Assembly: GCA_002269645.1 (NCBI GenBank)
Contig: NIVC01000952.1
Coordinates: 39,059-103,058, forward strand
Source of the DNA: Macrostomum lignano
Lineage: Eukaryota
Direction: 5' to 3'
Length of the DNA: 64,000 nt
The translations under genes and the position numbers were made by a program. Numbering within the stretch: the first letter of the stretch is position 1; the number at the start of each line of letters is the position of its first letter. Under the pieces are notes generated by a model. It did not search any database. It was not told the origin of the DNA and saw only the letters and a program-made list of their open reading frames with translations. This document shows, piece after piece, positions 2,416 to 63,906 of this stretch.

Positions 2416-4353
2416 ATGTACTTCAACAGCGAAGGCATCAGCGAAGCCGCATCATCGCCCAGTCTGTGCGACTTTCGACGCTGTGCAGCCGCTGGCGATG
2501 CGCATTTTCGGCTTCCACCGGATGACGGAAGCTCCTCTGTCAACGCCTTCAACGCTGACACCCCGTTGAGCTGCAAACGGTCCCCAGATCGAAGCAGAAA
2601 GACCTATAAGCTTACTCGATTCAGCACTGCGGAAGTTTGCCTGACCCCGGACTTGCAGCAGGCGGTTGTCAGGTCACGGTCAGCTGTGGATTCAAGGCCT
2701 CGCTCAGAGAATACAGTTGTATCGTCACTGAATGAGAAAGCGACTGCAAGCAGGAGGACTCACTGCTTCTTCGAGAGTATCTTCCTCAGGAGTTTGCCGG
2801 TTACTCCAGCTAGGGAAGTGTCTCACAATTTGCTGCTCGAGTCCTGCACACCTATGCCAACGCCAGTGGAGGCAGACAGACCAGTAATCAAGACAGTGAG
2901 GAAGCATAGGTGCATCGTTTTTTGTAGCTCAACTCCGGCACAGGTGCTACCATCGCCAAGGTCGTACTTGGTCCCGTCGAATCTCGACTGCCCCTGCAAC
3001 CTTCGCTGCATTGACTGTCCGACTGGAGACGCCATCGAATGGCCATCGAGCGCACAAAACATTCTGCAGAAGTGCAGTTCAACGACACACTGCGTCAACC
3101 GCAGCTTTCGGTATTCTCTCGAGCATCAAATTACATCCCGCGTCTCTGACGACCCATCACCTGTCTTGGCCGTAGAATTCAAGGAGGAATTCAACCTTCA
3201 GCTGGAGCTGCTGTACCAGCAACCACAGAGCTGGCAAAGCTGTGCAGAGTCTACAAGCGAGTCAATTTACCTACAACCGGCTGTTTCTCGGCGAGAAAAA
3301 GTACTTTTCTACTGTGAGCTTTCCGACTCTGACGAGACTGTGACGGACTGGCAGATGGCTGCATTTAACAAGCTGCAATGTCCCCCCGTGACTGCACGTT
3401 GCATCAGGGAGAAACCGACTGCGTCAGCTGATTGGCAAATGGAGCACTGGCGCATACAGTGCAACGAGCCACAGTGCGCACCTCTCACTGAGGTTCCGTG
3501 TCCGGCTTTGCATTACTCAAGTGGAGCCAGTACTGGCGACTGCGGCTGCACTACCGACTGTCAGCAGATGAAGCCTCAGTGGCCGCCTGCACCTGATCCA
3601 CATTCATCACATCGAACTCGCGACAGCGACTGCTGCACATCAGTTAGCTACTCAAATGTGCACTCAGCACCAGAACGACGTGTAGACACGAGATGGCGGC
3701 AGCGTCGGCGAGCTCCCTTGGATTCACCGTCAGCTTCGGCGGTCTCAACTCAGTCAGCAGAGACCGAATCAGCCGTACTGCATACGGCCATTGCAAGAGG
3801 CGGATTCGACCACCTTCTGCAGACGCTGGAGAGGGCGAGACTGCGGTACAGCGGCTCTGCTGTCTCTGCAACTTTCTCCTGTCCAGGGACGGGTAGTGGA
3901 CGACGTCGCCGGAGGCAGCAGAGCAAGACGTGCAGCTTTCAGACATGCCCTGCAACCTGCGATCTTGGCAGCGAAAATGATAGAAATGAATTAGAGATTG
4001 AAGACGAAGATGTCGAGGAGTCTGAGCTTGAGAACACGCAGGTACTCGACGGAAACCAGTCGAACTTCGAAGACAACGACTGCAGCGATGAGTTTTGTGC
4101 CTGCGACACTCAATATTGCAGCTGCAACTTTAGAACTTGTTGCTGCGAAGGCGACTATCAGTGCAATGACGGTCTTGCAAAGCCGTCTGTGCAGCCTCTT
4201 ATCGACCATTCGACCGCATCTCAGCGGGAGCGCCGGGAGGCGAAAATCATCGACTCCATGTCGCAGTCGCTGCTCACGCTAACGAAGAGCTTGGAGTCGT
4301 GCATGCGTCACATTCGCGGCACAGTGGCGGAGCTGCAGAGCTGCAGCGAATAA
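2416..4353 (+). CDS. Intronless 645-aa orphan ORF, Ser/Cys-rich, with acidic patch, Cys cluster and C-terminal coiled-coil-like helix
   Basis: Long non-repetitive open frame; cluster FCACDTQYCSCNFRTCCCEGDYQC; no recognisable family motif. Confidence 0.5.
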   Translation: MYFNSEGISEAASSPSLCDFRRCAAAGDAHFRLPPDDGSSSVNAFNADTPLSCKRSPDRSRKTYKLTRFSTAEVCLTPDLQQAVVRSRSAVDSRPRSENTVVSSLNEKATASRRTHCFFESIFLRSLPVTPAREVSHNLLLESCTPMPTPVEADRPVIKTVRKHRCIVFCSSTPAQVLPSPRSYLVPSNLDCPCNLRCIDCPTGDAIEWPSSAQNILQKCSSTTHCVNRSFRYSLEHQITSRVSDDPSPVLAVEFKEEFNLQLELLYQQPQSWQSCAESTSESIYLQPAVSRREKVLFYCELSDSDETVTDWQMAAFNKLQCPPVTARCIREKPTASADWQMEHWRIQCNEPQCAPLTEVPCPALHYSSGASTGDCGCTTDCQQMKPQWPPAPDPHSSHRTRDSDCCTSVSYSNVHSAPERRVDTRWRQRRRAPLDSPSASAVSTQSAETESAVLHTAIARGGFDHLLQTLERARLRYSGSAVSATFSCPGTGSGRRRRRQQSKTCSFQTCPATCDLGSENDRNELEIEDEDVEESELENTQVLDGNQSNFEDNDCSDEFCACDTQYCSCNFRTCCCEGDYQCNDGLAKPSVQPLIDHSTASQRERREAKIIDSMSQSLLTLTKSLESCMRHIRGTVAELQSCSE

Positions 4354-7769: not shown

Positions 7770-8075
7770 TCGATCCCTATCAGATAGTAGACACCCCTAT
7801 CAGACAATGGACACCCCTATTCTATCAGATAGTGGACACCCCTAGAAACCCCTTGGAAACCCCTTAAAAACGCATTGGACACCCCTAGAAACACATTGGA
7901 CACCCCTAGAAAACATTAGACACCCCTAGAAAACATTAGACGCCCCTAGAAAACATTAGATACCCCTAGAAAACATTGGACACCCCAATCATTCAGTGGA
8001 CACCCCAATCAGGCAATGGACACCCCAATCTTGCTGTGGACACCCCAATCAGGCAGTGGACACCCCTACCCAGTA
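7770..8075. repeat. Degenerate TGGACACCCC(TA/AA) tandem repeat
   Basis: Repeated core visible; it produces the spurious MDTP... N-terminus of the 7976 ORF. Confidence 0.75.
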
Positions 8076-18984: not shown

Positions 18985-20627
18985 GTCTGTAATCAGTGTG
19001 TTGTTGGTCTGTAATCAGTGTGTTGTTGGTCTGTAGTCAGTGTGTTGTTGATCTGTAGTCAGTGTGTTGTTGATCTGTAGTCAGTGTGTTGTTGGTCTGT
19101 AGTCAGTGTGTTGTTGGTCTGTAATCAGTGTGTTGTTGGTCTGTAGTCAGTGTGTTGTTGGTCTGTAATCAGTGTGTTGTTGGTCTGTAGTCAGTGTGTT
19201 GTTGGTCTGTAATCAGTGTGTTGTTGGTCTGTAGTCAGTGTGTTGTTGGTCTGTAATCAGTGTGTTTTCGGTCTGTAGTCAGTGTGTTGTTGATCTGTAG
19301 TCAGTGTGTTGTTGATCTGTAGTCAGTGTGTTGTTGGTCTGTAATCAGTGTGTTGTTGGTCTGTAGTCAGTGTGTTGTTGGTCTGTAATCAGTGTGTTGT
19401 TGGTCTGTAATCAGTGTGTTGTTGGTCTGTAGTCAGTGTGTTGTTGGTCTGTAATCAGTGTGTTGTTGGTCTGTAGTCAGTGTGTTGTTGGTCTGTAATC
19501 AGTGTGTTTTCGGTCTGTAGTCAGTGTGTTGTTGATCTGTAGTCAGTGTGTTGTTGATCTGTAGTCAGTGTGTTGTTGATCTGTAGTCAGTGTGTTGTTG
19601 ATCTGTAGTCAGTGTGTTGTTGATCTGTAGTCAGTGTGTTTTCGGTCTGTAGTCAGTGTGTTGTTGATCTATAGTCAGTGTGTTGTTGATCTGTAGTCAG
19701 TGTGTTGTTTATCTGTAGTCAGTGTGTTGTTGATCTGTAGTCAGTGTGTTGGCAGTCTGTAATCAGTGTGTTGTTGGTCTGTAGTCAGTGTGTTGTTGGT
19801 CTGTAATCAGTGTGTTTTCGGTCTGTAGTCAGTGTGTTGTTGATCTGTAGTCAGTGTGTTGTTGATCTGTAGTCAGTGTGTTGTTGATCTGTAGTCAGTG
19901 TGTTGTTGATCTGTAGTCAGTGTGTTGTTGATCTGTAGTCAGTGTGTTTTCGGTCTGTAGTCAGTGTGTTGTTGATCTATAGTCAGTGTGTTGTTGATCT
20001 GTAGTCAGTGTGTTGTTGATCTGTAGTCAGTGTGTTGTTGATCTGTAGTCAGTGTGTTGTTGGTCTGTAGTCAGTGTGTTGGCAGTCTGTAATCAGTGTG
20101 TTGTTGATCTGTAGTCAGTGTGTTGTTGGTCTGTAGTCAGTGTGTTGTTGATCTGTAGTCAGTGTGTTGTTGATCTGTAGTCAGTGTGTTGTTGATCTGT
20201 AGTCAGTGTGTTGTTGATCTGTAGTCAGTGTGTTGTTGATCTGTAGTCAGTGTGTTTTCGGTCTGTAGTCAGTGTGTTGTTGATCTATAGTCAGTGTGTT
20301 GTTGATCTGTAGTCAGTGTGTTGTTGATCTGTAGTCAGTGTGTTGTTGATCTGTAGTCAGTGTGTTGTTGGTCTGTAGTCAGTGTGTTGGCAGTCTGTAA
20401 TCAGTGTGTTGTTGATCTGTAGTCAGTGTGTTGTTGGTCTGTAGTCAGTGTGTTGGCAGTCTGTAATCAGTGTGTTGTTGGTCTGTAGTCAGTGTGTTGG
20501 CAGTCTGTAATCAGTGTGTTGTTGGTCTGTAGTCAGTGTGTTTTCGGTCTGTTGTCAGTGTGTTGTTGGTCTGTAGTCAGTGTGTTGTTGGTCTGTTGTC
20601 AGTGTGTTGATGGTCTGTAGTCAGTGT
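18985..20627. repeat. 22-bp minisatellite CTGTAGTCAGTGTGTTGTTG(A/G)T, probably a 3'UTR intron of MARK
   Basis: About 74 units; starts immediately after a GTGAGT (20633, minus strand) located 5 nt past the MARK stop codon. Confidence 0.9.
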
Positions 20628-20638
20628 ACTCACGATAA

Positions 20639-28628
<7,990 letters not shown>

Positions 28629-34389: not shown

Positions 34390-35132
34390 CTAAGCCGCAG
34401 TTTTCCGCAGTCCCGCCATGGCGGCTGCAGTCTTCGGCCTGCCGCCTCCCGTGCCGACCAGCCCAGGCGCCGAGGCTGCCGCGGCTGCCGAGGTCAAAGA
34501 CGCGTCGCCACCGCCACTGCCGCCGCTGCTGCCGCCACCAGCCGCTGCTGCTGCAGCCAGCAGCGAATCTTCCGCGGCGTTGGCGGCGGTCGCGGCCGCC
34601 ACCCGAGCGGCGGCGGCGGCGGTGGCCGGCCGGGGCAGCAGGCGGGCGGGCACGGAGGTGGCGCCGATCCAGTCCGTCCGCTTTGCCTCGAGAATTCGCT
34701 GCCGGTCCAGCAGCCGCATCGCCGAGTCGCCATCGTCCTCGTCGTCCTCAACGCCCGCCTCGTCCTCGCCGCCTGGAGCGTCGCCGCCGTTGCGAATCCG
34801 GCGCCGGCGCGGCGGCAAGTCCGGCAGGCAGCTCGCCTGTCGGATTCGGCGTTTGTTGAACCAGTCGTCAACCGAGGGCGTCAGCTTGGTGTCCATCATG
34901 TGCGCCAGGTCCACGAGAAGGTCGCGCTCCGTCTTCTCGTTGTCGCGGGTCCAGGCCGACCAGTCTCGGTTGAACTTGGCGCACTCGCTGCCCAGCTGCA
35001 GCTGCATCTTCATGTTCTTGTCGCGGACGCGGATCTCAGCGAACGGTCGGGCAGTCTTGCGCCGGCCCCGGCTGCCCCGCTGCTGCTGCTGCTGCTGCAT
35101 GCTGCGCCTGTATTTGCTGCTTGCTCGCGACA
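34390..35132 (-). CDS. Orphan protein exon (poly-Q, helical core, Ala/Gly-rich tail); first exon unresolved
   Basis: GC-rich 247-codon frame after acceptor CCCTTGCAG|TG. Complex core MKMQLQLGSECAKFNRDWSAWTRDNEKTERDLLVDLAHMMDTKLTPSVDDWFNKRR. Confidence 0.6.
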
Positions 35133-36070
35133 CTGCAAGGGCTTGGAACTCAACTATATAGCCTTATTGTATTCAATAAGCTTTCACCTGCCTGTCAGCG
35201 CAACCACCAGCGCAGCAGAGAAGGGAAATTGCAAAAAAAGAGACGCTGGGTTGGCCTTTTGTTGCCGTTGGCGATCTCCTTCCTATAAATTTTATTCTTC
35301 TTTTGCACCGGGAATCCGTGCCTGTGCCTGTGCCGTGCGTCTGGCCAAGCGCTAAATGCGCAGTCTGAGACGAGCGGAGACACTTGAGAAGAATGGATCG
35401 TCTGAGAGGGGAGCTTTTCTATGCACTTGGCCTCCAGGCAGGTCCGGACTTGCAACCCCCCTCTGTGCCAGGAGTATAAGCTCACTCACCCGCTTTCTCT
35501 GTCTCTGAGTTTGCTCTGATGGATACAAAAGAAACACACAAGGTAAGAGAGAGAGAAGACTCTAAACACTTTTTCGCCGGTGCCTAACTCGCTTACAGAC
35601 TGAAGCAGTCCTCCTTCTCGTGTCGAAATGTCGCCAACTCATGGCAGTTTAACCAGCAAGGGGACATTGCTCAGTGTAGTTAAATGAGTACTGGCGCCAC
35701 TTGATGCACTGCAGGACCACAAGCAAGCAATCCAAGCTAGTTATTTGTGCAAACAGTTTTGCATCGCCCTACTACTGACAGTAATATAAAACACTCCCAG
35801 AGCTATACCGCACAATACTCAGGTTGGCATGCCTACGCCAATTCAAAATGAATTTAAGGCAAGCACCGGGCTGCAGCTCCAGTATTGAATTTTAAGTGTG
35901 TTGGTCACAACTCGTGTGCAGCGGCTATTGAAGAGTCTGCTTTAATCAAATATACCAACAAATGGCGCACAGATCCATACAGAGCATCACCAGAATGCTA
36001 TTGAAATTATCAGACAGCTGAGAACTCGGGCTTCGCGAAAGTGAGTTGTTAATATTCTACGGTAGAATGC

Positions 36071-36513
36071 TCAGACGGCCTCTTGCTGCGGCCACCAGCG
36101 CTTGTGTCCGTGTCCGGAGGCAGCCGCCACTTCGCGCACCTGGGCGGGCTCGGACGGCTGGTCCCAGGCCGGCTGCCCGCCGTTGTGATGCCGCTTCACC
36201 TCGATGTTGCCGGCATCGTAGTACTTGACTGGCCACCACCGCTTGTGCACGCTGCATGCATTGGTTTTGGGGGGGGTTGTAATTAGGCAAGCGAGTCTGT
36301 CGAACTTGACAACTTGAGGAAATCAGCCAGTCAGTCATGACTCACCCGCCGGCTGACGGGTGCGCATCGGCTAGGAGGGCGCAGCTGCCGAATAGGGCTG
36401 GAAAAAATTAATAAACCCCGTTATTTTTAGTCAACTCAAACAACAAATCCAACGCCAAGTCGGGTATGCTACTTACCAACGGCTAGAAGTAGTACGGTTG
36501 GCAAGAGTCGCAT
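36071..36513 (-). CDS. 89-aa secreted peptide (neuropeptide-like) precursor with three KR sites
   Basis: Exons 36513-36477 (donor GTAAGT), 36397-36346 (donor GTGAGT) and 36251-36071 give MRLLPTVLLLAVALFGSCALLADAHPSAGGVHKRWWPVKYYDAGNIEVKRHHNGGQPAWDQPSEPAQVREVAAASGHGHKRWWPQQEAV*. Confidence 0.85.
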
Positions 36514-36606
36514 TTTTTTCTGCTGCACTGGGAGCTAGGAGCGTGGAGTCGGGTAGGGCGCGGTCAGGCGGGACCATGCAAGCGTTGGCTGGGAGTGGCG
36601 GAGCGC

Positions 36607-36662
36607 TTATATATTGTATTGCATCTCAAGCGACTTTGACGAGCCAATGACCTATCAGGTCA
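36607..36662 (-). promoter_or_regulatory. Core promoter of the prohormone gene: TATA box, CCAAT and an everted AGGTCA repeat
   Basis: TATATAA on the minus strand at 36613-36607; CCAAT 36644-36648; TGACCT-ATC-AGGTCA 36648-36662. Confidence 0.6.
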
Positions 36663-41217: not shown

Positions 41218-44200
41218 TCAAGGCATGTACAGCCGCTCGCACTTCCTTTCAGCTGATGACGCAACGTCACCGGCGGGCCGGCAGCTGTCGGTCACCCAGT
41301 CGGCCGTGACAACGTGGATTCGGCGCCGCTGGTCCCGGCTGGCGGCCTCTCGAATCTGTCGCAGCCGGCTGGCGTCCTCGTCAGGCCGAACCACCGCGTG
41401 CGTCACCGACGGAGTCAACGAGGCGGCGAGGCGGCCGCCGGCCCGACGGACATCGGCGGCAAGTTCGCGCCAGCGGCCGTCCGGATCTCGGCGAGTTGTT
41501 GGATCGCCTGGTGGGGCGGGGAGAATTGAACTGCATTGCTCTACTACTGACAGTAGTAGCACTGGTTACCGATTCAGGCGTCTTTTGGGGAGGTCAGGAT
41601 CGGCTTGGGGCGATTCTTGAGGTGGTTTGATGGCGATTTTTGAGGTGATTTGAGAGCAATTTGGAGGTGCCTTGAGGGCGATTTTAAGGGCCGTTCACCA
41701 ATGAGGAGGCAGCAATCCAGATACACAGTGCAGCCGGCCAGCGGCAGTCCCACATCGTCCGGCAGCAGCTCGGTCGGCCATTCAGCCTCGACTTCGTCAT
41801 CGTCCGCATAGTCGTCGGCGGCAGCAGTTCCCGAAGTCGACTGGCCGCAGTGAGTTTTGTCCAGCAATTCTCCGAGAGCCTGCGGCGTCACCGGCTTCGT
41901 GTAGCTGTCGCCGAACTCGTCGTGGCTGCCGACCGCCGCCGACGCCGCGCGCTCCTCTTTGGCCAGAGTGGCCGGCCGGGCAAAGTGGACGAACTGGCGG
42001 GTGAGCGGCAGCAGGCGGCCGGCCTCCAGGCTGGCCAGCAGCCAGTCGGCGGTGGCCACATCGTGCCGGCCGCTGGCGATCAGGTTGCGCGCCCTGGCGT
42101 TCACCGAGTGCGCCACCACGCAGCGGGTGGCCCTGCCGGGATTCTGGACGACCCGGCCGCCGGCGGCCAGCACCCGGCGCTCCAGCTCGGCTTTGGGCGC
42201 CGCCTCCAGGCCGTTCAGCACCATCAGCTCGCAGCCGGTCAAGAAGCCGGCCGTATCGGCAGCGGCCGAGACACCGACAAACTGAGAGCCAACCTGGGGC
42301 CGGGCTGCCGCCGCCCTGGCTATCGGAGCCCGACGCTGTCGTTTCCGTCCTGGCGGCGACGTTGTGGATGACGCTGCCGCTCCATCTTCGTTGTCTTCGC
42401 AGTCGTTGTCGTCACGATTGCCGCCGACGGGCAGCACCGAGCGGGCCAGCTTGCCCTGACTGCGCAGCCGCAGGGCCGTCAGCTGGGCGACGCTGGTCGC
42501 CTGCCTGCAGGTTTTGTCTTCGCGAAAGCCGACAACGCGGGGGAAGCGCAGAGTGTAGCCTGTGGCGTAGGCGTCCGAGGCCACGATCTCGCTGGCCCGG
42601 ACCTGCAGTGCGGTCATGAGCAGTGAGCAATCTATGAGCAGTGATGAGCAATCTATGAGCAGTGATGAGCAATCTATGAGCAGTGATGAGCAATCTATGA
42701 GCAGTGATGAGCACTGTAATCTATGAGCAGTGATGAGCACTGCAATCTATGAGCAGTGATGAGCACTGCAATCTATGAGCAGTGATGAGCAATCTATGAG
42801 CAGTGATGAGCACTGCAATCTATGAGCAATGATGAGCACTGCAATCTATGAGCAGTGATGAGCACTGTAATCTATGAGCAGTGATGAGCACTGCAATCTA
42901 TGAGCAATGATGAGCACTGCAATCTATGAGCAGTGATGAGCACTGCAATCTATGAGCAATGATGAGCACTGCAATCTATGAGCAATGATGAGCACTGCAA
43001 TCTATGAGCAGTGATGAGCACTGTAATCTATGAGCAGTGATGAGCACTGCAATCTATGAGCAGTGATGAGCACTGCAATCTATGAGCAGTGATGAGCACT
43101 GCAATCTATGAGCAATGATGAGCACTGCAATCTATGAGCAATGATGAGCACTGCAATCTATGAGCAGTGATGAGCAATCTATGAGCAGTGATGAGCACTG
43201 CAATCTATGAGCAGTGATGAGCAATCTATGAGCAGTGATGAGCACTGCAATCTATGAGCAGTGATGAGCAATCTATGAGCAGTGATGAGCACTGCAATCT
43301 ATGAGCAGTGATGAGCAATCTATGAGCAGTGATGAGCAATCTATGAGCAGTGATGAGCAATCTATGAGCAGTGATGAGCACTGTAATCTATGAGCAGTGA
43401 TGAGCACTGCAATCTATGAGCAGTGATGAGCACTGCAATCTATGAGCAGTGATGAGCACTGCAATCTATGAGCAGTGATGAGCACTGCAATCTATGAGCA
43501 GTGATGAGCACTGCAATCTATGAGCAGTGATGAGCACTGCAATCTATGAGCAGTGATGAGCAATCTATGAGCAGTGATGAGCAATCTATGAGCAGTGATG
43601 AGCAATCTATGAGCAGTGATGAGCAATCTATGAGCAGTGATGAGCACTGTAATCTATGAGCAGTGATGAGCACTGCAATCTATGAGCAGTGATGAGCAAT
43701 CTATGAGCAGTGATGAGCACTGTAATCTATGAGCAGTGATGAGCACTGCAATCTATGAGCAGTGATGAGCACTGCAATCTATGAGCAGTGATGAGCACTG
43801 CAATCTATGAGCAGTGATGAGCACTGCAATCTATGAGCAGTGATGAGCACTGCAATCTATGAGCAGTGATGAGCACTGCAATCTATGAGCAGTGATGAGC
43901 ACTGCAATCTATGAGCAGTGATGAGCACTGCAATCTATGAGCAGTGATGAGCACTGCAATCTATGAGCAGTGATGAGCACTGCAATCTATGAGCAGTGAT
44001 GAGCACTGCAATCTATGAGCAGTGATGAGCACTGCAATCTATGAGCAGTGATGAGCAATCTATGAGCAGTGATGAGCACTGCAATCTATGAGCAGTGATG
44101 AGCAATCTATGAGCAGTGATGAGCAATCTATGAGCAGTGATGAGCAATCTATGAGCAGTGATGAGCAATCTATAAGCAGTGATGAGCAATCTATGAGCAG

Positions 44201-47200
44201 TGATGAGCAATCTATGAGCAGTGATGAGCAATCTATGAGCAGTGATGAGTAATCTATAAGCAGTGATGAGCAATCTATGAGCAGTGATGAGCAATCTATG
44301 AGCAGTGATGAGCACAGACAGCAATTAGCCGACCTGAACCACAAAGGAGTTGCTGGGATCAATCCACACGTCCGGCCGCTCCCGCTGCCCATCAGCCAGC
44401 CGGAAGGCCTCCGGCGGGCTGCGCTTATCGAACCGCTGCCAATGCTGAGCCATCTTCATGTTGTACTCGAACAGAGTCTGCTTGGAGTAGCCGCTGCCCA
44501 CCTTGCAGAAGCTCAGGTACTTCACGCTGGCACCGCCATCTCCATCATCGTCTTCGCCGCCACCCGCCGCGCCAACGTCGTCCTCGCCGACGTCGGGCAG
44601 GGCGCAGAGGAAGTGGCTGCACATGCCGGCCCGGTGGCCACTGCCGAAGTAGCCGCCAACGATGACGCAGTCGACATCGTCAACGAGGCCGCCGACGAAC
44701 TCCGGCTTGAGCTTGAACCAGCCGGCCTTGCGGCTCGCCACGCTGTACACCGAGTCAGCCAGCTTGGCCATCAGGCCTTCTTCGCGCGATTCAATTGCGG
44801 CATTGAATTTCTCCACAGCTTCGGCCTGTGTGGAGGCCAGGCTCCACTCGGAGATGAGCAGCCGGCCCGGCACCGGGGCCAGCACCTGTTGATGCAGCAC
44901 CGGCTCTCATTGTAGTGACGCCTGACACCCCACCCCCTGATGTCACTCGCCCTGACACCCCACCCCTGATGTCACTCGCCCCGACACCCCACCCCCTGAT
45001 GTCCTCGCTTGACACCCCACCCCCTGATGTCACTCGCCCTGACACCCCACCCCCTGATGTCACTCGCCCTGACACCCCACCCCCTGATGTCACTCGCCCT
45101 GACACCCCACCCCCTGATGTCACTCGCCCTGACACCCCACCCCCTGATGTCACTCACTCTGACACCCCACCCCCTGATGTGTCACTCGCTCTGACACCCC
45201 ACTCCCTGATGTCACTCACTCTGACACCCCAACCCCTGATGTCACTCGCTCTGACACCCCACTCCCTGATGTCACTCGCCCCGACACCCCACTCCCTGAT
45301 GTCACTCGCCCCGACAACTGAATCAGTCATCATTGTCACTCCCTCCGGCACCTGAATCAGTCATCATTGTCACTCCCTCCGGCACCTGAATCAGTCATCA
45401 TTGTCACTCCCTCCGGCACCTGAATCAGTCATCATTGTCACTCCCTCCGGCAACTGAATCAGTCATCATTTTCACTCCCTCCGGCAACTGAATCAGTCAT
45501 CATTTTCACTCCCTCCGGCAACTGAATCAGTCATCATTGTCACTCCCTCCCGCAACTGAATCAGTCATCATTGTCACTCCCTCCGGCAACTGAATCAGTC
45601 ATGATTGTCACTCCCCCGGCAACTGAATCAGTCATGATTGTCACTTATTCGGCAACTCAGTCATCTATTGTCACCCCGCAGTCCCCAGCCAGCTCACCAA
45701 CCTGATTATCAAGAATTCTTTTCCGCTCAACAAGCGGCCGGTCGGTGAGCACTCGGCCGTTGAGCAGGATGAGGTCGAACACCACAAAGCAGGGCACGTA
45801 GCCCCGCACGGACACTCTCTTAATATCGAAGTCCTGCGCCTTGGAGCCCATGGTGTTGGTCTCCAGGTTGAAGCCCATCATCTCGCCGTCAAGAATGCAG
45901 TTGTCAACGCCGGGCAGGAAGGCGGACGCCAGATGCGGAGTCAGGTTGCCCGGCCCGTCGGGAGCCGCTCCGTAGGTGGCCGTCCACTCCAGGCCGCTGC
46001 GCGACCAGTACCTGTAGCCGCTGCCCGACTTGTGCAGCTGCATTCGCTCGCCATCAAACTTCACTTCGAGCAGGAATGGCCGGCCGGCGAACAGTTCGCC
46101 CAGCTGCAGGACGCTCGCCGCCTCGCCCAGCATCGGCCGGAACGGCGTGTTCAGGGCGACGCCGATTTCGTGCAGACGGACGCCTGGATAGTGCAGGCTG
46201 GTGCACACCTGGGACAGGTGGAAGATGGTGATGATAATCCAATTCAAAATCTCACTGAGAGTCATGATAATCCAATTCAAAATCTCACTGGAGATCATGA
46301 TAATCCAATTCAAAATCTCACTGAAAGTCATGATAATCCAATTTAAAATCTCACTGAAAGTCATGATAATCCAATTCAAAATCTCACTGGAGATCATGAT
46401 AATCCAATTCAAAATCTCACTGGAGATCATGATAATCCAATTCAAAATCTCACTGAAAGTCATGATAATCCAATTCAAAATCTCACTGAGAATCATGATA
46501 TGATAATCCACCTCAAAATCTCACTGAAAGTCACGATAACCACCTCAAAATCTTACTGGAGATCATGATAATCCGCTTCAAAATCTCACTGAGAGTCATG
46601 ATAATCCACCTCAAAATCTCGCTGAAAGTCATGATAATCCGCTTCAAAATCTCACTGAGAGTCATGATAATCCAATTTAAAATCTCACTGAGAGTCATGA
46701 TAATCCAATTCAAAATCTCACTGAGAGTCATGATAATCCAATTTAAAGTCTCACTGAAAGTCATGATAATTCAATTCAAAATCTCACTGGAGATCATGAT
46801 AATCCAATTCAAAATCTCACTGGAGATCATGATAATCCAATTCAAAATCTCACTGAAAGTCATGATAATCCGCTTCAAAATCTCACTGAGAATCATGATA
46901 TGATAATCCACCTCAAAATCTCACTGAAAGTCACGATAATCCACCTCAAAATCTCACTGGAGATCATGATAATCCGCTTCAAAATCTCACTGAGAGTCAT
47001 GATAATCCACCTCAAAATCTCGCTGAAAGTCATGATAATCCACCTCAAAATCTCACTGGAGATCATGATAATCCGATTCAAAATCTCACTGAGAATCATG
47101 ATAATCCACCTCAAAATCTCGCTGAAAGTCATGATAATCCGCTTCAAAATCTCACTGAGAATCATGATAATCCACCTCAAAATCTCGCTGAAAGTCATGA

Positions 47201-48985: not shown

Positions 48986-49009
48986 TCAACTGGAGAAGAA
49001 GACGAAAGA

Positions 49010-50350
49010 CCTTTGCCTCACCGACCAATCAGAGAGTAGCTAACCTTTGCCTCACCGACCAATCAGAGTCGCTAACCTTTGCCTGACCGACCAATAAGAG
49101 GGTCGCTAACCTTTGCCTCACCGACCAATCAGAGAGTAGCTAACCTTTGCCTCACCGACCAATCAGAGTCGCTAACCTTTGCCTCACCGACCAATAAGAG
49201 GGTCGCTAACCTTTGCCTCACCGACCAATCAGAGAGTCGCTAACCTTTGCCTCACCGACCAATCAGAGAGTCGCTAACCTTTGCCTCACCGACCAATTAG
49301 AGAGTTGCTAACCTTTGCCTCACCGACCAATCAGAGAGTCGCTAACCTTTGCCTCACCGACCAATCAGAGGGTCGCTAACCTTTGCCTTACCGACCAATC
49401 AGAGGGTCGCTAACCTTTGCCTCACCGACCAATCAGAGAGTCGCTAACCTTTCCCTCACCGACTAATCAGAAAAGTCGCTAACCTTTGCCTCACCGACCA
49501 ATCAGAGAGTAGCTAACCTTTGCCTCACCGACCAATCAGAGAGTCGCTAACCTTTGCCTCACCGACCAATCAGAGAGCCGCTAACCTTTGCCTCACCGAC
49601 CAATCAGAGGGTCGCTAACCTTTGCCTCACCGACCAATCAGAGAGTAGCTAACCTTTGCCTTACCGACCAATCAGAGGGTCGCTAACCTTTGCCTCACCG
49701 ACCAATCAGAGAGTCGCTAACCTTTGCCTCACCGACTAATCAGAAAGTCGCTAACCATTGCCTCACCGACTAATCAGAAAGTCGCTAACCTTTGCCTCAC
49801 CGACTAATCAGAAAGTCGCTAACCTTTGCCTCACCGACCAATCAGAGGGTCGCTAACCTTTGCCTCACCGACCAATCAGAGAGTAGCTAACCTTTGCCTT
49901 ACCGACCAATCAGAGGGTCGCTAACCTTTGCCTCACCGACCAATCAGAGAGTCGCTAACCTTTGCCTCACCGACTAATCAGAAAAGTCGCTAACCTTTGC
50001 CTCACCGACTAATCCGAAAGTCGCTAACCTTTGCCTCACCGACTAATCAGAAAGTCGCTAACCTTTGCCTCACCGACTAATCGGAAAGTCGCTAACCTTT
50101 GCCTCACCGACCTGACAGCCACAGAGTGCATGAAGGTTTCTCTCTGACCAGCCACAGAGTGCATGAAGGTTTCTACCTGACCAGCCACAGAGTGCATGAA
50201 GGTTTCTACCTGACCAGCCACAGAGTGCATGAAGGTTTCTACCTGACCAGCCACAGAGTGCATGAAGGTTTCTCTCTGACCAACCACAGAGTGCATGAAG
50301 GTTTCTCTCTGACCAGCCACAGAGTGCTTAAAGGTTTCTACCTGACCAAC
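49010..50350. repeat. 32-34-bp CCAAT-containing minisatellite (49010-50110) and 33-bp minisatellite (50110-50350) between RPS12 and LIG4
   Basis: CTAACCTTTGCCTCACCGACCAATCAGAGAGTCG about 32 times; CCTGACCAGCCACAGAGTGCATGAAGGTTTCTA about 7 times. Confidence 0.95.
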
Positions 50351-59091: not shown

Positions 59092-59478
<387 letters not shown>

Positions 59479-63686: not shown

Positions 63687-63719
<33 letters not shown>

Positions 63720-63743
63720 GAGAGAAGAGAGAGAGAGAAAGAG

Positions 63744-63774
<31 letters not shown>

Positions 63775-63799
63775 GAGTGAGAAAGAGAGAAAGAGAGAA

Positions 63800-63847
<48 letters not shown>

Positions 63848-63848
63848 C

Positions 63849-63881
<33 letters not shown>

Positions 63882-63906
63882 CGAGAGAGAGAAGAGAGAG
63901 AGAGAA
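63687..63906. repeat. (GA)n microsatellite
   Basis: Direct observation. Confidence 0.98.

Follow-up and report, generated by a model that had tools for sequence, protein, structure and literature searches.

Positions 36071–36513 of a 64,000 nt stretch of Macrostomum lignano DNA (the window, meaning the whole stretch that was analysed) raise two linked questions, namely whether they hold a spliced gene, and whether the product of such a gene is cut into small secreted peptides of the kind that serve as neuropeptides. A preliminary description, made from the letters and a list of open reading frames, had proposed a hidden three-exon gene for a neuropeptide-like precursor that releases two peptides beginning with Trp-Trp-Pro (WWP). 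The reading favoured here, with a probability of roughly 0.6, is an independent gene of three exons, driven by a TATA box and coding for an 89 aa pre-pro-peptide.

Gene structure, database records and promoter

The gene is read from the minus strand, which the preliminary description had not specified, and consists of three exons (36513–36477, 36397–36346 and 36251–36071) separated by introns of the GT..AG type. The coding part of exon 1 (nt 36477–36513, 37 nt) runs from Met1 into codon 13, of which it contains the first base, and specifies the start of the signal peptide. Intron 1 (nt 36398–36476, 79 nt, phase 1) begins with GTAAGT and ends with TTCCAG, its 3′ end reading TTTTTTCCAG. Exon 2 (nt 36346–36397, 52 nt) supplies the remainder of the signal peptide (to nt 36363 if this is cut after Ala24) and the N-terminal propeptide, and is followed by intron 2 (nt 36252–36345, 94 nt, phase 2, GTGAGT..ATGCAG), which interrupts a Gly codon three residues ahead of the first Lys-Arg (KR) pair. 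The coding part of exon 3 (nt 36071–36251, 181 nt including the TGA stop at 36073–36071) encodes the three KR sites, the two WWP peptides and their intervening spacer. The spliced CDS of 270 nt gives a protein of 89 aa, MRLLPTVLLLAVALFGSCALLADAHPSAGGVHKRWWPVKYYDAGNIEVKRHHNGGQPAWDQPSEPAQVREVAAASGHGHKRWWPQQEAV, and this translation is the same as the one obtained in the preliminary description by joining three small exons with consensus splice sites in frame. Splicing is the only reason why a simple list of ORFs does not show the gene; as an unspliced ORF, exon 3 has a GTG start and amounts to 59 aa, just under the default list cut-off of 60 aa.

The gene is, however, not hidden in the sense first proposed. 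The window belongs to contig NIVC01000952.1 of M. lignano and matches it at 100% identity over the 20.4 kb that surround the gene, so the gene is BOX15_Mlig013973g2. Its product is deposited as PAA74368.1 (89 aa), with a CDS identical to that of the window, is also found in UniProt, and has been annotated since 2017 as "hypothetical protein"; the gene is thus annotated though uncharacterised. Further entries cover near-identical sequences: PAA70515.1 (Mlig013973g1) is labelled "partial", is 110 aa long and reads through the 5′ UTR, while PAA70533.1 (Mlig028624g1, UniProt A0A267FA04) carries the change V70L. UniRef also holds A0A1I8ISX4, a protein of 115 aa that differs at its 5′ end and bears the automatic name "WW domain-containing protein"; this entry we take to stem from the annotation of an earlier assembly. 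The GenBank annotation was built solely on RNA-seq transcripts (StringTie, TACO, the TBONE boundary pipeline and TransDecoder ORFs; PMC5730564), and its models carry exactly this CDS, so a spliced transcript with exactly these junctions, on which the preliminary description had made its gene model depend, does exist.

Two more genomic copies (L001 and L003) are 96–98% identical to the window copy (L002). All three share a DNA ligase gene upstream and a gene for a 236 aa low-complexity protein downstream, and in L002 and L003 a MARK/SIK/MELK-type kinase gene lies further downstream. The DV1 assembly of M. lignano is described as redundant and polyploid (PMC5730564), and the presence of three near-identical copies fits this description. 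Variable columns among the copies number 3 of 270 in the CDS versus 41 of 837 in non-coding sequence (p = 0.0037), a signal of coding constraint that is weak, though significant, because the copies are about 98% identical. Within exon 3, only 1 of 181 columns varies, against about 5% in the flanks; two of the three changes in the CDS are synonymous, the other replacing Val by Leu in the spacer. The CDS is also distinct in composition, with a GC content of 0.67 (GC3 0.79) versus 0.43 in the introns.

These data bear on the possibility that the ORF arose by chance, in a transcript that is non-coding or mis-assembled, and yields no functional protein. The ORF is short, contains no recognisable domain and has homologs only within the same species, all of which would be expected of a chance ORF. 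Against this stand the high GC3 relative to the introns, the lower variability of the CDS among the copies, and the occurrence of the same CDS as in the GenBank models in the separate entry A0A1I8ISX4. The explanation is highly improbable, and the comparison with the paralog given below excludes it. That the gene is real can be regarded as practically certain: it is transcribed, spliced and under selective constraint.

The promoter region contains a TATA box (TATATAA, nt 36607–36613, minus strand) exactly 100 nt upstream of the ATG, in agreement with the distance of about 100 nt that had been noted for it. The ORF deposited for one of the sister copies (A0A1I8ISX4, P0004), which is transcript-derived, starts 18 nt past the end of the box; this agrees with transcription starting about 25 nt past the box, a spacing as expected if the box positions the start. 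ORFs deposited for sister copies extend upstream of the Met by 21 codons (P0001) and 26 codons (P0004), and indicate a minimum 5′ UTR at nt 36514–36588 (minus strand), a stretch that contains an in-frame TAG in the window copy. An inverted CCAAT box can be read from the sequence some 30 nt further upstream than the TATA box (ATTGG on the gene strand, nt 36644–36648, minus strand), and the promoter of the paralog is likewise built, with ATTGGCT upstream of TATTATAA. A perfect palindrome of 15 nt, TGACCTATCAGGTCA (nt 36648–36662), lies just upstream of the core promoter and consists of two AGGTCA-type half-sites with a 3 nt spacer. A search allowing up to one mismatch returned 1 match versus 0.17 expected; the palindrome is the same in all three genomic copies and does not occur in the promoter of the paralog, and whether it forms part of the promoter is uncertain. 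At the other end of the gene, a likely poly(A) signal (ATTAAA, nt 35941–35946, minus strand) is found 124 nt past the stop codon and is the same in the three copies.

The precursor and its predicted products

The protein begins with a short n-region (Met-Arg), followed by a hydrophobic core of 13–19 residues and by small residues at positions -3 and -1 of the possible cleavage sites. Mean Kyte-Doolittle hydropathy is 2.39 for residues 3–22 versus -1.17 for the remaining protein. Modelling with AF2 on the small family alignment returned a helix at residues 3–20, no strands, and pLDDT values mostly below 50 elsewhere, although this is a weak test because the alignment is shallow. Hydropathy, the -3/-1 residues, the modelled helix and the layout of the paralog all fit a predicted N-terminal signal peptide. 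Its cleavage site is ambiguous, with one candidate between ADA and H (24 aa) and another between SCA and L (19 aa), the latter suggested by alignment to the paralog, where the corresponding cut would fall between CSA and R. The hydrophobic N-terminus on which the preliminary description had based its signal peptide is therefore real, while the released peptide HPSAGGVH that it had listed is insecure, because either cut may apply; the fragment might in truth be LLADAHPSAGGVH. This N-terminal fragment is without conservation and is unlikely to matter.

The KR pairs occupy residues 33–34, 49–50 and 80–81. None is preceded by Arg at P4 or fits the furin pattern R-X-K/R-R, as can be read from the sequence, so the sites are of the PC1/3 or PC2 type and not of the furin type. 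Cleavage at these sites would yield two WWP peptides. Predicted peptide 1, WWPVKYYDAGNIEV (nt 36197–36238, minus strand), is flanked by KR codons at 36244–36239 and 36196–36191, and predicted peptide 2, WWPQQEAV (nt 36074–36097, minus strand), is preceded by a KR pair at 36103–36098 and followed by the stop codon. Their predicted [M+H]+ values are 1739.843 and 1043.494, respectively. The remaining elements of the original layout were borne out in the sequence: three KR sites, the motif HKRWWP occurring twice, a spacer of 29 aa, and no Gly as an amidation signal ahead of any of the three KR pairs. A six-frame translation of the entire window contains WWP three times, and two of these occurrences are in this gene. 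When the mature part of the protein was shuffled, a hexapeptide repeat arose in 22 of 200,000 shuffles (about 1 in 10,000).

Both peptides are mildly acidic, with a predicted net charge of -1 each, and the protein contains only two Tyr residues. A cationic antimicrobial peptide and a Tyr-rich eggshell protein were considered as other identities, and both were ruled out by composition.

Searches for a folded domain were negative. No Pfam family was matched at E ≤ 10, and no PDB chain by the mature part in a sequence search at E ≤ 10. The precursor appears, from sequence and model alike, to be a small protein (89 aa) with no sign of a globular domain. This has a direct bearing on the automatic UniRef name, which implies that W36 and the segment W59-D-Q-P62 belong to a WW fold, a three-stranded module with proline-rich ligands. 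A superficial likeness to the WW consensus (PF00397) does exist: two Trp are spaced 23 residues apart, the second is followed by x-x-Pro, and an H-N pair is present. The Pfam WW model, however, is among those unmatched even at E ≤ 10, the β-sheet is absent from the AF2 prediction, and the central aromatic pair of strand 2 is missing. In the paralog, the Trp residues are 29 residues apart instead of 23, and there is no H-N pair. WW domains are, moreover, cytoplasmic or nuclear modules, while this protein carries a secretion signal and is predicted to be secreted. A WW-domain protein is accordingly a very remote prospect, and in the lack of a Pfam match, a PDB match or a predicted fold the name "WW domain-containing protein" is unsupported and misleading, a point that the present findings correct.

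Conservation between two paralogs

When 1.84 billion representative proteins were searched exhaustively with phmmer, a single further relative came up (P0005, E = 1.7e-7). It is BOX15_Mlig007078 (PAA58252.1, PAA83139.1 and PAA88489.1; UniProt A0A267GT56), a protein of 90 aa that is also from M. lignano, also has three genomic copies, and shares 39–46% identity with the window protein, depending on the alignment used. Its layout, a signal peptide MKLITVLLVALIAAAAICSA followed by RPLEVRRFGG-KR-WWPVKYYDADNIQV-KR-VGHGRPSLELPASAWDNYPDSYIS-KR-WWPVNPHEGSGN-RRRR, repeats that of the window protein in the order signal peptide, propeptide, KR, WWPVKYYDA.NI.V, KR, a spacer with AWD, KR and WWP. For its two predicted peptides, WWPVKYYDADNIQV and WWPVNPHEGSGN, the calculated [M+H]+ values are 1796.864 and 1379.613, respectively. 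The gene plan is also the same, with three exons, an exon 1 of 37 nt, a phase 1 intron 1 and a phase 2 intron 2, the latter inside a Gly codon 2–3 residues ahead of the first KR. The genomic neighbourhood is different, a tetraspanin gene adjoining the paralog.

Alignment of the two proteins reveals a conserved unit, KR-WWPVKYYDA[G/D]NI[E/Q]V-KR, together with a second KR-WWP. Invariant columns are mostly those of this unit (K33 R34 W W P V K Y Y D A. N I. V K49 R50) and of K80 R81 W W P, and the twelve others are dispersed over the signal peptide, propeptide and spacer. Peptide 1 is identical at 12 of its 14 residues, and both KR pairs that flank it are kept, as is the third. Over the 18 codons from KR to KR there are 7 synonymous and 2 non-synonymous differences (pS 0.69, pN 0.05), compared with a pS of 0.62 and a pN of 0.57 in the signal peptide. 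Silent sites are thus near saturation, so the duplication must be old. The combination of saturated synonymous sites with a preserved peptide, and the retention of the reading frame, of the intron phases and of the length of exon 1, are what exclude the chance ORF discussed above.

Selection has kept the 14-mer and its flanking dibasic pairs nearly unchanged, while the spacer has changed in both length (29 aa in the window protein versus 24 aa in the paralog) and sequence. Such peptide-centred conservation is the pattern typical of precursors cleaved at dibasic sites and a recognised mark of processed neuropeptide precursors, as far as can be judged from one pair of paralogs, to which the comparison is confined because no member of the family has so far been seen outside M. 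lignano. Molluscan precursors are likewise conserved only in their bioactive peptides (PMC4200219), and the 14-mer is presumably the conserved, bioactive product here. Peptide 2 is less well preserved: its KRWWP is kept, and the rest differs, the paralog having a longer second peptide (WWPVNPHEGSGN) that ends in RRRR. The paralog departs from the window protein in other details as well. Its propeptide contains an RR pair and ends in GG-KR, the sole possible amidation site in that protein, and the residue following its second KR is Val. According to cleavage rules established for insects, Val after KR may disfavour cleavage.

Both spacers contain a short AWD, offset in the alignment, and a few conserved Pro and Gly, and these could point instead to a small protein that stays intact. 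They also speak for a different account, in which the product is a small Trp-rich secreted protein or peptide of non-neural tissue, either intact or cut at KR outside the nervous system, for example in prostate or seminal fluid, in adhesive or rhabdite glands, or serving in defence or as a pheromone. WWP and AWD, both conserved, would then be structural or binding motifs and not the "messages" of a hormone. The secretion signal, the small size and the absence of an amidation signal suit such a protein as well as they suit a prohormone, and restriction to one lineage with fast divergence is common for the reproductive and gland proteins of Macrostomum (PMC5977470, PMC7336406). The conservation pattern argues the other way, since all three KR pairs persist despite the differing length and sequence of the spacer, purifying selection is centred on the 18-codon KR-peptide-KR unit, and a predicted fold is absent. 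A weaker point is that the gene identifiers do not appear in the supplements of the seminal-fluid screen, a study that may use other identifiers. Overall, a non-neural protein of this sort, although the main rival, is rather unlikely, and a secreted peptide precursor processed at its KR pairs is the probable identity of the product, judging from its sequence features.

Relatives, known prohormones and a possible role

Wider searches did not extend the family. A profile built from both sequences and run against 5.8 billion proteins found nothing past the two M. lignano clusters, and the patterns WWPVKYY and DA[GD]NI[EQ]VK, back-translated and searched against JGI metagenome contigs, gave no relative. 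Protein searches detected no similarity to described prohormones or to flatworm families (FLP, NPF, npp, spp), although a likeness limited to a short motif would escape them. The peptide strings, including the N-terminal Trp-Trp-Pro motif, do not occur in the searchable literature. Similarly, the identifiers Mlig013973, Mlig028624 and Mlig007078 were found neither in the full-text literature searched nor in the supplements of PMC5816591, PMC7336406, PMC12896417, PMC5946080, PMC5977470 and PMC5730564. Identity with a described prohormone, the finding that would have removed the novelty first suggested for the WWP peptides, was thus encountered neither in protein searches nor in the literature. 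The suggestion was right in that respect and too broad in another: with relatives so far seen only in M. lignano, the gene is a lineage-specific orphan and not the member of a new spiralian family. On present sequence data the WWP peptides appear to form an undescribed two-gene family, so far restricted to Macrostomum and filed among hypothetical proteins.

The protein shows the four sequence-level features of the generic prohormone class, i.e., a predicted signal peptide, dibasic sites, peptide-centred conservation and the lack of a domain, and would be placed there on these grounds. Its closest known counterparts in terms of probable working are probably the orphan prohormones of flatworms, including the planarian spp genes. 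Smed spp-1 to spp-19 were found by searching for a signal sequence with multiple dibasic sites (Collins et al. 2010, PMC2953531), and mass spectrometry and in situ hybridisation subsequently confirmed them; the flatworm npp genes go back to McVeigh et al. 2009, as cited in PMC2953531 and PMC4490696. Like these, the window gene codes for a short precursor in which a signal sequence and several dibasic sites are the only recognisable features, is lineage-restricted, lacks named homologs outside flatworms, and would be expected to mature by way of PC2 and then a carboxypeptidase. It differs in that protein searches detect no sequence similarity to any of them, and in that its peptides are non-amidated and start with Trp-Trp-Pro. 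The planarian spp genes, furthermore, have mass-spectrometric and in situ support, whereas the peptides of the WWP gene are predicted ones.

A possible course of maturation can be outlined on the model of such prohormones. The signal peptide would be removed upon co-translational entry into the ER, after which a convertase of the PC2/PC1 type would cut behind the three Lys-Arg pairs in the regulated secretory pathway, presumably in dense-core vesicles, and a carboxypeptidase would trim the basic residues. The expected products are the non-amidated peptides WWPVKYYDAGNIEV and WWPQQEAV, plus fragments of the spacer, with the N-terminal Trp-Trp-Pro common to both peptides as a candidate recognition element. 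The D-amino-acid peptides NdWFamide and achatin carry their D-residue at position 2, and by analogy Trp2 of the WWP peptides could be isomerised as well, though this is speculative.

The most likely role of the products would be that of a neuropeptide or peptide hormone acting on a putative receptor, with a presumed neuronal origin. A suitable convertase is available in the nervous system: the PC2 homolog of M. lignano is expressed there, and hatchlings do not survive its knock-down (PMC4490696), while the pc2 promoter marks neurons across the whole nervous system (PMC12435804). Counting against a neuropeptide, the predicted peptides are without exception non-amidated and mildly acidic; both properties are allowed for neuropeptides and are less typical of them. 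That the product is a true neuropeptide can be put forward only tentatively. The same caution applies to the fuller proposal that the WWP family (Mlig013973/028624 and Mlig007078) may represent undescribed neuropeptides restricted to Macrostomum or the Macrostomorpha, with the invariant N-terminal Trp-Trp-Pro as the receptor element, the 14-mer as the main ligand and a dedicated orphan receptor, a possible outcome though somewhat less likely than not.

One further comparison was with the molluscan PKYMDT peptides, which have been proposed to be proctolin-like and, as far as is reported, are confined to molluscs (bioRxiv 10.1101/2021.03.03.433790). Like the WWP peptides, they lack amidation, come from a spiralian and are cut from a precursor with dibasic sites, and there is a faint likeness between P-K-Y-M-D-T and P-V-K-Y-Y-D-A. 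In the WWP peptide, however, the similar residues are internal to the 14-mer and offset by one, and the protein searches found no similarity between the precursors. The resemblance was too weak to suggest kinship with the PKYMDT or proctolin peptides and is treated as coincidence.

Lineage-specific orphan genes of prohormone-like type are common, with dozens in every spiralian surveyed, so the WWP gene opens no new category and will not surprise a specialist. It may be useful all the same in M. lignano, a transgenic model species in which the neuropeptide complement is far less charted than in planarians. A two-gene orphan family with a sharply conserved and easily synthesised 14-mer offers a concrete handle for building a reporter line as well as for RNAi, peptidomics and the deorphanisation of receptors. 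It also serves as an example of how lineage-specific peptide precursors can remain unnoticed among "hypothetical proteins".

The window was also searched for further paralogs and scanned for Rfam families and tRNAs, and none were found. It contains two sizeable ORFs that match no Pfam family (nt 34390–35133 on the minus strand and nt 2416–4353 on the plus strand). Between 7.8 and 50.4 kb the window is rich in minisatellite arrays, mostly with periods of 15–41 nt; these are unusually dense and apparently lie in introns of the flanking kinase and ligase genes.

Start codon and database name of the WWP protein

The WWP gene (BOX15_Mlig013973g2, 36513-36071, minus strand) occurs in three near-identical genomic copies (L001, L002 and L003), of which L002 is the window copy. 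Relative to the other two copies, L002 has lost 2 nt and 1 nt in the 5' UTR (within 36514-36545), and these small deletions result in an in-frame upstream TAG. The transcripts of L001 and L003 are free of any upstream stop, which explains why one sister copy was deposited as a "partial" protein of 110 aa (PAA70515.1), and also accounts for the 115-aa version in UniProt (A0A1I8ISX4). The Met common to all copies is the true start of the protein. The UniProt entry was automatically named "WW domain-containing protein", a designation that is unsupported by Pfam, a PDB sequence search, structure prediction or comparison with the paralog (Mlig007078, a diverged sister gene elsewhere in the genome), and which looks like a database artefact.

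A palindrome near the WWP gene promoter

Next to the core promoter, on its upstream side, lies a perfect palindrome, TGACCTATCAGGTCA (36648-36662), comprising two AGGTCA-type half-sites separated by a 3 nt spacer. An inverted CCAAT box, some 35 nt before the gene's TATA box, overlaps with the palindrome, whose sequence is unchanged in all three genomic copies. The promoter of paralog Mlig007078 does not carry it. A search of the window allowing up to one mismatch returned a single match, compared with 0.17 expected. The palindrome might be a nuclear-receptor-type element, or else a coincidence.

Neighbouring genes and other reading frames

The WWP gene has neighbours on its own strand to either side: on the upstream side an ATP-dependent DNA ligase that contains a BRCT domain (PF01068, PF00533; 41574-46511 and beyond), and on the downstream side a protein kinase of the MARK/SIK/MELK type (22776-23834), which has a UBA domain and, in the deposited model, also a KA1 domain. 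About 940 nt downstream of the WWP gene, and sharing its strand, is a single-exon ORF (34390-35133), for which GenBank lists a 236-aa gene in each of the three copies. This gene and the DNA ligase adjoin the WWP gene in every copy, while the kinase was observed only next to L002 and L003. The ORF product matches no Pfam family; its low-complexity tracts are poly-Gln, Arg-rich, acidic or Ala/Gly-rich. Opposite it lies a mirror ORF of equal length, a pattern typical of GC-rich low-complexity sequence. An uninterrupted ATG ORF of 645 aa (2416-4353, plus strand), also without a Pfam family (E <= 0.01), could be a lineage-specific gene, a repeat-derived ORF or a large exon.

Tandem repeats

Between nt 7800 and 50400 there are more than 25 minisatellite arrays (for example, 18985-20627, 26645-28256, 42627-44315 and 49009-50112), alternating with exons of the kinase and DNA ligase genes. 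Units are mostly 15-41 nt, differ from array to array, and are present in up to about 75 copies. The (AGAGGGTAGC)n array at 26645-28256 explains why both GC and AT skew are extreme in its 2-kb bin. Two long (GA)n/(AG)n dinucleotide microsatellites are found at 59094-59478 (about 190 copies) and 63687-63905 (about 110 copies).
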